Below, in pieces: positions 1 through 8,729 of a DNA stretch of 64,000 nt. Location of the stretch: positions 32,235,398 through 32,299,397 of the forward strand of contig NC_068983.1 in assembly GCF_001194135.2 (NCBI RefSeq), written 5' to 3'. The notes under the pieces are model-generated. The model did not search any database and was not told the DNA's origin. It saw only the letters and a list, made by a program, of their open reading frames with translations. This stretch comes from Octopus bimaculoides. Lineage: Eukaryota. Position 1 is the first letter of the stretch. Each line of letters starts with the position of its first letter. The translations under genes were made by a program, and so were the position numbers.

Positions 1-155
1 GTTTCCAATCTTTCATTGAAACCCATCTTGTTGGTCACTGAGAAATATTTTTGGAAACTAGTGTGGCTTGGTGACGGGAAGAATGTTAATAATTCTCAAC
101 GAATTTCATTTAATCTAAAAGGAAAAATGAACATTAAATTGGATATAAATTTTGA

Positions 156-281
156 GGTGTGATGATGAAGTAACTGCTATTAAGCGTTCGGCTCTTTGGC
201 ACTAGTTACCGAAAGGTTGAACCCACTAGTGTTTGCTGGACGCTATGACAAAATGTAGCCAAGTATGGCTGTCTGAACACC
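156..281 (+). ncRNA. SNORD22: C/D box snoRNA, U22 (SNORD22)-like, in RPLP0 intron
   Basis: Terminal stem GGTGT(156-160)/ACACC(277-281), C box ATGATGA 162-168, D box CTGA 273-276, length 126 nt. Central AAAGGTTGAACCCACT and 3' CTGTCTGA resemble vertebrate U22 as recalled. Long stem 183-244 and small hairpin 256-271. Confidence 0.8.
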
Positions 282-352
282 CCTGAATACTAAGTATTTC
301 AGCATGCTGTTGATATTACTGTACTGACTAATTTTCTTTTAATCACATTCAG

Positions 353-2433
353 TTGTCCTCATGGGTAAAAACACAATGATGAGAAAGGCCATAAGAGGTC
401 ATTTGGAGCACAATGCAGCCCTTGAAAGGTAAGTTCTAAATCTTTTCCACTGAAATGAGGTATGTATATTGCCAGTTTAGATTCAAATGTTGCTTGGGTT
501 ATTCTTGATCAGAAGCAATCTTGGACTGGTATAGTAATCGGTCACTTTTTGCCTTGTAGTATCTTTCATACTGGACACTACAACTTCCCCATAAGTGATA
601 CAATTCTTCTTTTTTTTAATTTTTTTTTCCCCTTTTGTTATATAGGGACGTGTAATTAAACAATGGTATCTCTGATCACAGAAAATAAATATTTATGCAA
701 CTATTGAAAAATATAACATTTAGTGAAGTGTTTTAAATGCAGATGCTGGCTTCACTCGTTTTTTTTTCTATTATAGCATTGGACCAGTCAAAGCTTTCAG
801 ACTGGAGAAGCTAGCCATGGTGTTTCATGCCTGTAAATGTCACTTATGCATGCAGTGTCCATTCCCAATCTCTTGTGAAAATTCATCTTAGCTATGGGGA
901 AATAACTGAAGACTGGTGACAGGCAGGGTGGCTGTAGAAAATCCACGTGTAATTTTGTTCTACCCATTCCTCAATGGGAAAGTGGATGACTGTCAATCTT
1001 GCTCACCCCCCACACCTAACAACCAATAAAAAAAAAAGCTGGATATAAGTACTGAGGTCAATTTTGTTTGACTAAGCCCTGTGTTGCCCTAGCATGGCTG
1101 CAGTTCTAAGATGAGTCTTTAAGAGGGTGATGTGTATAGTAATATAAAATGAGCACCTATACAAGATTTGCTTGATAATAGTGTTTAGTAATTGCCTTAA
1201 TATTTAGGTTATTAAACAAAAACTTGTCTGTTGTAGGTTGCTACCACACATTAAGAACAATGTTGGTTTTGTGTTCACTAAGAATGACTTGGCTGATATC
1301 AGGGATAGATTGCTGAATAACAAGGTTAGTTGATTTTCATTCCATCTACATATGGAGCTTTAATTTTGATTTTTTTTTTCTCCCCTCGCTACTGACAAAT
1401 TGATATTTATTTATAGGTGAAAGCTCCTGCTCGTGCTGGTGCTGTTGCTCCTTGTGATGTGTTGATACCTGCTCAAAATACAGCTCTTGGTCCTGAAAAG
1501 ACTTCTTTCTTCCAAGCTTTGTCTATCCCAACAAAAATCTCCAGGGGTACTATTGAAATCTTGAATGATGTCCGTTTGATAAAGGAAGCTGATAAAGTTG
1601 GTGCTTCCGAGGCTACATTGCTGAACATGTTGAACATCTCACCATTTTCATATGGTTTGGTCATTGAGCAAGGTAGGTTGGGCATTATTTTATTTTGCAG
1701 CCCTCAAGAATGATGAAAAAAAAGAATGACTTTCGCTCTACTGAAAGCTATGTAGATTCTTGTCCACTGACTTAAGGGCTATATTTATTTATTAGTGTCC
1801 TGTCTGGTTTATATTTAATTGTTATATTTAATGTTTTTAAAATTTTCTATACTAGTGTATGACTCTGGAACTGTTTTTGCACCTGGTGTATTGGACATTA
1901 CTGATGATGATATCCGTAAGAAGTTCATGTCTGTAAGTACTTTTCTCATTTATAAACTCCTTGCAGAATGTTCAAATCTGCCTTCATCATGATATTCAAG
2001 TAATATATTTTCTTTGCAGGGTGTGACAAATGTTGCCAGCTTGTCTCTGGCTATTGGGTATCCAACTTTGGCTTCTATACCACATCTTCTTGTCAATGGC
2101 TTCAAAAATCTGGTTGCTATATCTTTGGAAACAGATATTGAATTTGAAGAAGCAAAAGAGGTATATTACATTTGAGTTTTTATATTTTTTTTTCACTTGG
2201 TAAATCTGTCAATATTACATGTTTTTATTGGATGATAATATGAAAATGATTTGTATTTTCAGATCAAAGAGTTGTTATCAGATCCTGAAAAGATGGCAGC
2301 TGCTCTGGCAGCAAGTGCTGCTACTACTGCTGCTGCAGCTCCATCTACCCCTGCAGCAGAAGAAAAGAAGGAAGAAAAAGTGGAGTCTGAAGAAGAGTCT
2401 GACGAGGATATGGGTCTTGGCTTGTTTGATTAA
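353..2433 (+). CDS. RPLP0: 60S acidic ribosomal protein P0, 3' six coding exons (353-428, 1237-1324, 1417-1672, 1856-1932, 2020-2160, 2263-2433); 5' exons lie before the window
   Basis: All introns are GT-AG and phases join in frame. Peptide includes [61 protein letters not shown]-like [14 protein letters not shown], and the P-protein C-terminus [17 protein letters not shown]-stop. Confidence 0.98.
469..605 (+). ncRNA. H/ACA box snoRNA in RPLP0 intron
   Basis: Hairpin 1 (471-530: GCCAGTT/GACTGGT and TTGCTT/AAGCAA), H box ATAGTA 531-536, hairpin 2 (TCACTT 542-547/AAGTGA 593-598; TTGTAGT 554-560/ACTACAA 577-583), ACA 600-602 plus 3 nt. Confidence 0.85.
1705..1774 (+). ncRNA. SNORD59: C/D box snoRNA, U59 (SNORD59/snR54)-like 18S methylation guide, in RPLP0 intron
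   Basis: C box ATGATGA 1710-1716, D' CTGA 1741-1744, D CTGA 1767-1770, flanking stem AGCCCTCAAG(1699-1708)/CTTAAGGGCT(1771-1780). Guide AATGACTTTCGCTCTA versus recalled human U59 AATGACTTTCGTTCTT. Confidence 0.85.
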
Positions 2434-5407: not shown

Positions 5408-6411
5408 TGTAGTGAAACTACCTATCGTCACTAGATACAAAACTACTATCGCCATTACATGCAATCTTCTCATTTAAATATAAATAAATGCGAGCGTAGT
5501 AGGGAACCCATTCCTTGTCATCACGTGACTGATTATTATTCGAATCGGTAACTTCTTCGAACCTTTCCCGCCAGAACGCAAACTGACCAATCACGGCCTC
5601 TAATAAGGTCACGTGATGGAGTAAAATTCTGAAGGCATTTGGAGCCCTCTTAACGCTATATATAGATCAACTCATACCCCACAAATTCGTCTTGGTCCAG
5701 TTTCTCTTTGAGAACTGTTCTGTGTACCACACGACAGCAGCAGCAGTTCCAGCGACCACTTCAACAGCTTCGTCCAGCCAACGATGACCACCGCCGTCGN
5801 NNNNNNNNNNNNNNNNNNNNNNNNNNNNNNNNNNNNNNNNNNNNNNNNNNNNNNNNNNNNNNNNNNNNNNNNNNNNNACTACCGAGTATCTCCACCAGCG
5901 TCAACACGACTTACTATGTACACCACACCAAACTACCGCGGCACATCTCTCTCTTCGATTCTGTTAGGTGACTCAGCTTCACCACGGTAAATAAACAGAC
6001 AAGAGTTCTTAAACAGACAAGAAATTCTCAGCCAGCGACGAACATCTGTATAACAAGAATCACGGCCCGGCATCGATGCCACGACATCACAACTAGTGAT
6101 CAGCTCTGCCAAACTCAGCCAACTCACTTCACATACAGATTCATATTATTGTGTACCCAAGAACTGGTATAATTGTTCACGTGTTATTGACTCTCCTTTT
6201 CTCTGCTGTAATATTTCTCATACACATACATGTATCACTCACATACACACTTTTCTTTGCATGACGGCCTGTCTTTGATTATGCTATTATATGTCGCATT
6301 CACACTCTCACACAGACATACATCTTTAACGCTACAATAAATATCTCTGTTATTCATCTAATACGGTTGTGGTCTTTCATTACTGGTCATCTATGTTATC
6401 GTCGCATAACA
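5408..6411 (+). mobile_element. candidate solo LTR (about 1 kb)
   Basis: TGTAGTG...CATAACA termini, CCAAT 5587-5591, TATATATA 5657-5664, AATAAA 6336-6341, CpG-rich relative to flanks; no clean TSD. Confidence 0.5.
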
Positions 6412-7189
6412 TATCATGTATATCATTATTCATCATGATGATGATTATTGATATCTATAATATTGTGTGTTCGACCGTGTGACACGTTTAAATAAAAGGA
6501 GTCCTCTGTTTTTCCATTCGTCACCATTTCTCCTTTTTGAGTTCGCACGGTCGTCCCTTACACATACATGTATGCATACATACATTTATAAATTCGAGTT
6601 TGTTTGAGACCTGCATTCTAAATATTCAGGTGATTCAAGCCGAGCTTTAGAGGAAGGTGCAAAGAACCATGTATAGCATAAAAGAATATCTTACTCAACT
6701 TTTAAAAATTTTCTTTGAAAATATCCATACACAATACTGTATTAATGTGTATAAGTATTGTAAATGAAATCTTTTTTTTTTCTCTAAGTTTTTCCAATGC
6801 CTATTGCTGTTCTCAATACACATCCCATTACTTTCTACCAAAATCTCAATTATATTTTAAATAAATTAAAACACTTGGGCAATCTTGCTCATTATGACAT
6901 GGTAATGAAAGAATTATGGGCAGAAAGATTAGCATTTAGTTGGATAGTCCATATTTATAGAGTAGGCAATTTCTTTGCATTATTTTGCAAAAAAAAAAAA
7001 GGTAGAAATGGATGCAAATTTGTTATATAACAGGCAGAATTCTTATTCTGAAAAATACAATATTTCAGCCCAAGTATTTTATTGATCCTGGAAGGTTGCA
7101 GGGCAAAGTAAACCCCAGTAAGCCATTCTACTTGGAGTGGCAAAAGTGATATAATAGAAATTAATTATTATATACTTGGCACATAAAAA

Positions 7190-7503: not shown

Positions 7504-8088
7504 ATCATATATCTCTGCTCTTCTAGAATTGCACTGTGCTGGAACAGCAACTTCTAGATATAATTCAAATATAACCTATCAGATCATTAACATGGAAGAA
7601 TGTGATTCAGCCTTCGTTTAGTATGCTTGCTTGGAACAAACTACTAACCCTGTGAAGTTGAACTGAGTACAAATAAATGAAAGACTCATCAGTTATGTAG
7701 TACTGTGACTGCTTGGTATCACACTATTTCCATATTGTACCTGCTTACAATTAAATGTCATGACATTAAAAACACTCCTGTTAAGAGAGTAAACTCCTGA
7801 CCCTTCAGCTCGCAGTTGCTATGCAATGAAACCATAGTTATAGTATTCAGGAAAGACCTCTTACCTCAAAGAAATGCCTTTTCAGCTGTTGCTTGTTTAA
7901 AATGTCTGAGTATTTTGTTAATACATAATAATCAGAGCCAGAGGTGATTATTCACAGGGTATTTTTTTTTACCAGTTCTCATGAACAATAATGATAGCTA
8001 AAATATTTATCAATGTGCTCAAAGAAACATCATACCACCAATAAGGTAGCTGAACGTTAAATTAATTCTAATGTTGTTTTTGATTTAC

Positions 8089-8210
8089 CGGGCGCCGTGC
8101 TTAAAGAGCGACAGCTGCCACCGGTTGTTAAAAATTGCGTCTCCGAAATCTCTTGATTGTGATTCCGCCCAGACGCTCGCAAATCGGCAACTGGGTGTCA
8201 CTGACGACAA
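8089..8210 (-). promoter_or_regulatory. CpG-rich candidate promoter / non-coding first exon
   Basis: Local CpG cluster, GC box CCGCCC 8165-8170, minus-strand donor CCG|GTAAAT at 8089/8088. Confidence 0.3.
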
Positions 8211-8729
8211 AGACCCTTTTAATAAGTTAACATTTCAGTAACTGATATATATCGTTACTATAATAACTTTAAAGTGATATTGCAATGCAAGTTCTGCTTA
8301 AAATTTAAATAAGATCTCAATACAAGCGAATATAATTACAATTTTCGATATTTACAAACAATATCTAATAGTTTTCTGCTAGTAGTTAATTATTTTGTTT
8401 TAAAATAAGCTAGTAAAATATCAAAAAAATTCCTTGCCATGTACTTATTCCCAGTCAATCTTTTCTAAAATGTATCCTATGTAAGGGAGGTAATTCATAG
8501 CAAATAGGTTCGCTCTTTAGAGATGGCATACTTTCATTGAATGTCAGTAATAATTGAATTAATTAAATAAAAATAAATAAATCGCTTCTACTAACACATG
8601 ACTCGTGACTCATACTTGATAATTTAGTTTATATAAAGGTATTCTACGTTTGTGAAAAGAAAATCCCGTTTCACTATCTTAAATTTGTGCGTGTTTTCGA
8701 GCGACCATTAGCTTTGATTTTTACCAGTT

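Follow-up and report, generated by a model that had tools for sequence, protein, structure and literature searches.

Animals carry intron-encoded box H/ACA snoRNAs in ribosomal protein genes, examples being human SNORA52 in RPLP2 and SNORA70 in RPL10, and the uridine that such RNAs modify usually lies 14-16 nt upstream of the H or ACA box. Human RPLP0 is not known to host a snoRNA. The H/ACA scaRNAs, which act as Cajal-body guides for snRNA pseudouridylation, are built on the two-hairpin H/ACA scaffold that we also find in the octopus RNA described here. Outside animals, Arabidopsis snoR144 is a 144-nt H/ACA snoRNA from an intergenic cluster, whose 5' pocket (P1) is predicted to direct modification of 25S Psi1897 and whose 3' pocket is predicted for Psi1255 (Chen and Wu, 2009, PMC2685112). 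Our search of the literature found no report of snoRNAs from cephalopods or from RPLP0 introns, and no usable pseudouridine map for Drosophila.

Here we analyze a 64,000-nucleotide stretch of the Octopus bimaculoides genome (hereafter the window). Judged from its sequence, the element at 469-605 is a box H/ACA snoRNA of octopods: it is absent from annotation and ordinary in kind.

Results

A candidate H/ACA snoRNA within an RPLP0 intron

The first 2600 bases of the window match locus L122, from the O. bimaculoides chromosome record CM046603.1, at 100% identity, and tblastn with ribosomal protein P0 placed RPLP0 (uL10) exons on the forward strand at about 349-428, 1237-1324 and 1417-1671, with more downstream, the closest protein matches to these exons being octopod P0 proteins. 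The candidate lies in sense orientation in the intron between the first two of these exons and begins about 40 nt past the 5' splice site (Table 1).

Table 1. Predicted snoRNA features and host-gene elements (window coordinates)
Feature	Position	Strand	Description
Predicted box H/ACA snoRNA, whole	469-605	+	about 135-137 nt; two-hairpin fold and conservation
5' hairpin	470-531	+	long lower stem, asymmetric internal loop (8 nt / 1 nt), upper stem, apical stem-loop
H box	531-536	+	AUAGUA (ANANNA), in hinge; read directly
3' hairpin with predicted pseudouridylation pocket	541-599	+	from the fold
3' hairpin lower stem	541-547 with 593-599	+	GTCACTT with AAGTGAT; 7 bp
5' guide strand	548-553	+	UUUGCC; pairs with GGCAAA 3' of target U-C
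3' hairpin upper stem and apical loop	554-583	+	TTGTAGT (554-560) with ACTACAA (577-583)
3' guide strand	584-589	+	CUUCCC; pairs with GGGAAG 5' of target U
ACA box	600-602	+	directly after lower stem; then AUU, the predicted 3' tail
RPLP0 upstream exon	349-428	+	tblastn of RPLP0
Host intron of RPLP0/uL10	429-1236	+	GT 429-430 and AG 1235-1236, read directly
RPLP0 downstream exon	1237-1324	+	tblastn of RPLP0
Candidate C/D-box snoRNA, preceding RPLP0 intron	157-281	+	about 125 nt; UGAUGA near 5' end, CUGA near 3' end, terminal stem
Candidate C/D-box snoRNA, intron after the 1417-1671 exon	1702-1777	+	sub-threshold SNORD59 match

When folded with RNAfold, forward-strand positions 465-608 reach -35.6 kcal/mol (z = -2.8; one of 200 shuffles equally stable), fold z-scores range from -2.4 to -3.1, and two hairpins appear in both the MFE and the centroid folds of all four distinct copies that we recovered (see below). 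The original prediction, made from the letters alone, had proposed a complete hairpin-H-hairpin-ACA architecture with pocket strands TTTGCC and CTTCCC set 16 nt from the ACA box: the RNAfold layout and the boxes, as read directly, bear out that architecture, and on re-reading the sequence all of its coordinates are correct, including those of the two strands and the 16-nt spacing (counted from C584 to the base before ACA). The ends of the RNA, 469 and 605, are taken from the base of the stem and from ACA+3, respectively. The reverse strand is no more stable than its shuffles (z = -0.7).

The Rfam search that the original prediction had recommended, run against 4227 families, matched the element to none of them, H/ACA or otherwise, at gathering or at E<=10, on either 6 kb or 201 nt, so the candidate would represent an unannotated, new snoRNA within a known class. 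We rejected a reading as an scaRNA: none of the four distinct copies contains a CAB box (UGAG), and the best target is rRNA.

Two other introns of the gene contain candidate C/D-box snoRNAs. The first (157-281) is a sub-threshold Rfam match to SNORD22 (29.5 bits, gathering 50; E 0.003), with which it has an internal GAACCCACU block in common, and it is 95% identical in O. sinensis and 78% identical in A. hians. The second (1702-1777) scores 23.8 bits against SNORD59 (gathering 45), has the near-identical guide UGACUUUCG.UCU.CUGA, and is kept in A. hians (79% over 89 nt). With conserved C/D-like elements in introns neighboring that of the H/ACA candidate, octopod RPLP0 appears to be a multi-snoRNA host gene.

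The locus has several other peculiarities. O. vulgaris has extra copies of the block at window 1536-1823, which comprises an exon end and the SNORD59-like element, within its RPLP0 locus. This arrangement suggests a local tandem duplication in O. vulgaris that is absent from O. bimaculoides, and the sole sign of repetition in O. sinensis is a 24-nt repeat of 1536-1559. The coordinates involved in these two Octopus loci are 6263-6286 and 6386-7430 in L123, and 6283-6567 and 7100-8143 in L124. The octopus host intron is also about 540 nt longer than its A. hians counterpart. The additional stretch, at about 770-1035 (+) downstream of the snoRNA, terminates in an A-run (AATAAAAAAAAAAGC, near 1025-1040), shares 86% identity with O. 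sinensis and resembles a SINE-like insertion produced by retroposition. The window also holds a full-length gene for the minor-spliceosome snRNA U11, located downstream of RPLP0 at a distance of about 6 kb (8088-8221, reverse strand; Rfam RF00548, 94.5 bits, E 4e-16).

Conservation of the element in octopods

We compared the window with the RPLP0 loci of O. sinensis, O. vulgaris and Argonauta hians, which together provide five sequences of the element, four of them distinct, from two families. All three additional octopods carry the element in the same RPLP0 intron: O. sinensis and O. vulgaris have one orthologue each, and A. hians has two copies, one in the orthologous intron and one in the next. 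By BLAST, the candidate is 91% identical to its O. sinensis and O. vulgaris orthologues, as against 83% over window positions 1-1068 (mostly intron) and 66-70% in the intron immediately flanking it. (In the O. bimaculoides row, MAFFT set a gap of the U-run at the wrong place; the identity calculated for the 3' hairpin is too low as a result, as is the 88% obtained for the element, and we read these columns by eye.) In A. hians the element is 78-79% identical and the remaining intron is unalignable. Such conservation across Octopus and Argonauta, together with sense-strand hosting in an intron of a ribosomal protein gene, reinforces the assignment to the H/ACA class.

The second A. hians copy (L001 7706-7966) occupies the intron that follows the LLPHIK exon and is part of a 210-nt block duplicated from the preceding intron, the two blocks now being 92% identical. 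In O. bimaculoides, the intron corresponding to that of the second copy (window 1325-1416) is only 92 nt long and contains no copy.

The positions that remain fixed are informative. The ACA box, the 7-bp lower stem of the 3' hairpin and both guide strands (UUUGCC and CUUCCC) are invariant in all five sequences, and the H box, which reads AUAGUA in O. bimaculoides, AUAAUA in O. sinensis and O. vulgaris, and AAAGUA in A. hians, fits ANANNA throughout. The U-run beside the 5' guide strand ranges from 5 to 7 in length, and the distance from pocket to ACA is 16 nt in the three Octopus species and 17 nt in both A. hians copies. In Argonauta, the apex of the 3' hairpin is remodelled with its helix retained, the 5' hairpin has a compensatory change (G492-C516 to A-U), and the extension of its lower stem has changed on both sides. 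With four distinct sequences such covariation is thin, and the lower stem and guide strands of the 3' hairpin, which never vary, provide conservation and no covariation; the case rests mainly on which positions are conserved.

Neither BLAST nor the guide pattern detected anything similar in the RPLP0 genes of a nemertean (Tubulanus, L125) or a horseshoe crab (Tachypleus, L126). The RPLP0 proteins with 83-84% identity, which we take to be those of squid or cuttlefish, are listed only from transcript-length contigs, with no genome record.

The 5' hairpin

In all copies, the 5' hairpin has a lower stem of 9-11 bp and an internal loop of 8-10 nt on its 5' side and 1-3 nt on its 3' side, with just 11 nt between the upper stem and the H box. 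We rejected it as a guide: this asymmetry and spacing leave no canonical pocket, and the long lower stem is partly backed by the compensatory changes. Applying five pocket definitions in three species, we recovered only weak, GU-rich rRNA matches that differ between species. The original prediction had assigned no target to the 5' pocket, as is to be expected of a hairpin that has no canonical pocket. The apical stem-loop GUUAUUCUUGA (498-508, +) is invariant in all five sequences though the stems below it change, and no guide function seems to account for it. We take the 5' hairpin to be structural.

A predicted target in 28S rRNA

The 3' pocket is complementary to the segment GGGAAG-U-C-GGCAAA of LSU rRNA, with which it forms 6+6 Watson-Crick pairs that leave U-C unpaired. 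We scanned every U of four complete rDNA units under the H/ACA pairing rule, in which the 3' pocket strand binds the rRNA upstream of the U, the next base on the 3' side of the U is left out, and the 5' pocket strand binds downstream: the target U is the sole match with at least 12 pairs in the four units, and there all pairs are Watson-Crick (6+6 or 6+7). Of 5000 shuffled pockets with matched composition, 11 attained 12 Watson-Crick pairs at some position in a 9.1-kb unit. Across 128 kb, i.e., both strands of the window, no site has more than six Watson-Crick pairs with at least four per arm, and the U11 gene of the window has no match to the pocket.

At least 120 metagenome contigs contain the 18-mer GTAAGGGAAGTCGGCAAA; among the matches listed, four long contigs are the complete eukaryotic rDNA units used in the scan, with the motif inside LSU rRNA. 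The Rfam consensus LSU_rRNA_eukarya has UAAGGGAAGUCGGCAAA in capitals, and its structure line presents AAGUCGGCAAA as an unpaired junction. The target U would thus sit in a highly conserved, single-stranded junction of eukaryotic LSU rRNA, and from the conservation of this core segment, the target sequence GGGAAGUCGGCAAA should be present in octopus 28S. The 5' half of the motif is spanned by the widely used invertebrate 28S primer rD7b1. The 25S rRNA of S. cerevisiae has the identical GGGAAGUCGGCAAA, and the equivalent uridine there, U1903, is not known to be modified. Both the conserved LSU segment and the 6+6-bp duplex with U-C unpaired had been put forward in the original prediction; the rDNA units and the Rfam consensus confirm that the segment exists, and the scan and the shuffles support the complementarity.

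We located the site in other rRNAs by offset. The target U lies 15 nt 3' of the U in AAUGUAGG, and the letters at +2 and +6 from that U are also U (sequence L037), matching the pattern of Um2824, Psi2826 and Psi2830 in human 28S (Taoka et al., 2018, PMC6182160). The complete human map contains nothing between Psi2830 and Cm2848 (Taoka et al., 2018, PMC6182160), so the target corresponds by offset to human 28S U2839 and is unmodified there, in agreement with the original prediction, which did not count this uridine among the mapped human pseudouridines. Among animal pseudouridine maps, we found none that shows the target position as modified.

In plants the situation is different. Arabidopsis Um1882 equates to human Um2824 and yeast Um1888 (Streit and Schleiff, 2021, PMC8351944 supplement), and because 1882 + 15 = 1897, the octopus target would equate to Arabidopsis 25S Psi1897 (rice 1900). 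By this offset mapping we infer that the target site is a known plant pseudouridine; the letters at the neighboring plant sites G1913 and U1918 appear consistent with this. Psi1897 is described as having no human or yeast equivalent (Chen and Wu, 2009, PMC2685112); it was detected by Sun et al. (2019), according to the supplement of Streit and Schleiff (PMC8351944), and its stoichiometry by plant BID-seq is about 0.6-0.7 in Arabidopsis, with 0.63 for rice (PMC12273003 supplement). The original prediction had suggested that the site may be lineage-specific: it is indeed unmodified in the complete human map, but if it is the plant Psi1897, it is not unique to octopods. Modification of the same U in plants would indicate that the site is accessible to H/ACA RNPs.

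One published entry disagrees with this mapping. Supplementary file 2 of PMC8351944 pairs Arabidopsis U1897 with human U2826, which is incompatible with its own equation of Um1882 with Um2824 (a 15-nt as against a 2-nt spacing). The U1897 = U2826 entry is probably a mix-up of two human 28S numbering systems. These systems differ by 13 in the target region.

Discussion

How the element should be read depends on two questions, namely whether it is an H/ACA snoRNA at all and whether 28S rRNA is its working target. AT-rich introns fold readily, the fold z-score is moderate (-2.4 to -3.1) and covariation is sparse, such that a pair of hairpins arising by chance in an AT-rich intron, or some other conserved intronic element (a splicing regulatory structure or a small-RNA hairpin precursor), could in principle have been mistaken for a snoRNA. 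However, the features that are conserved are the very ones that define the H/ACA class (i.e., the ANANNA hinge, the ACA, the pocket strands and the lower stem), they survive in Argonauta, where the other intron sequence cannot be aligned, and the 210-nt block with the element was kept intact after its duplication into the next A. hians intron. The reverse strand folds no better than shuffled sequence. We consider a non-snoRNA origin very improbable.

The second question leaves somewhat more latitude. The element might be a genuine H/ACA snoRNA for which the 28S match is not the working target, its partner being some other RNA (an snRNA, another rRNA site or an mRNA), or it might be of the orphan or chaperone type: the modification is a predicted one, the 17-nt spacing in A. 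hians is outside the canonical range, and the invariant GUUAUUCUUGA loop of the 5' hairpin is not accounted for by guide function. Yet the four rDNA units contain only one strong match, the 6+6 duplex composed entirely of Watson-Crick pairs with U-N unpaired, which shuffled pockets seldom equal, and from Octopus to Argonauta neither guide strand changes, though adjacent bases do. A Cajal-body guide for snRNAs is unlikely given the lack of a CAB box, and the U11 of the window offers no match. We regard a snoRNA with a different target, or with none, as unlikely. An intronic H/ACA snoRNA of RPLP0, with a 3' pocket that guides modification of the predicted 28S site, is the reading in which we have high confidence.

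For this intronic guide RNA, the sequence, fold, boxes, geometry, conservation, host and complementarity are those reported above, and we infer expression, processing, protein binding and modification. The snoRNA would be transcribed within the RPLP0 (uL10) pre-mRNA; after splicing, exonucleases would trim the intron back to the snoRNA, on which the H/ACA proteins (dyskerin/Cbf5, Nop10, Nhp2 and Gar1) would be bound. The 3' hairpin would be the active guide, its UUUGCC and CUUCCC strands pairing with GGCAAA and GGGAAG of pre-28S rRNA: the U-C dinucleotide, 16 nt from the ACA, would stay unpaired where the upper stem begins, and there dyskerin would isomerise the U to pseudouridine. The 5' hairpin would guide no modification and would instead contribute to the assembly and stability of the snoRNP.

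These results add a new and well-supported snoRNA to the sparse catalogue of cephalopod non-coding RNAs, and they point to octopod RPLP0 as a multi-snoRNA host gene. They also yield a precise prediction, i.e., a 28S pseudouridine that is absent from human and yeast and present in plants, and thereby offer a small data point on the turnover of rRNA modification patterns between lineages. Nothing here challenges current snoRNA biology; what is of mild interest is that the target is modified in plants yet not in human or yeast, and that the guide gene was duplicated from intron to intron in Argonauta. More tentatively, and with slightly less than even confidence, we suggest that octopods evolved, independently of plants, a guide for the junction U of GGGAAG-U-CGGCAAA, which is unmodified in human and yeast, and that in Argonauta the guide gene was recently copied between RPLP0 introns. 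If so, the same ribosomal position would have been recruited for modification twice.

In its general design, the octopus RNA resembles the intronic H/ACA snoRNAs of other animals: it is about 135 nt long, has the hairpin-H-hairpin-ACA layout with one bipartite guide pocket, lies in sense orientation, and has as its host a ribosomal protein gene that also carries C/D candidates. By its predicted target it is closest to Arabidopsis snoR144, which would address the same uridine, as judged by the offset from a conserved Um site. The two RNAs differ in the pocket employed, snoR144 using its 5' pocket for Psi1897 and the octopus RNA its 3' pocket, with no functional 5' pocket; independent origin of the two seems at least as likely as common descent.
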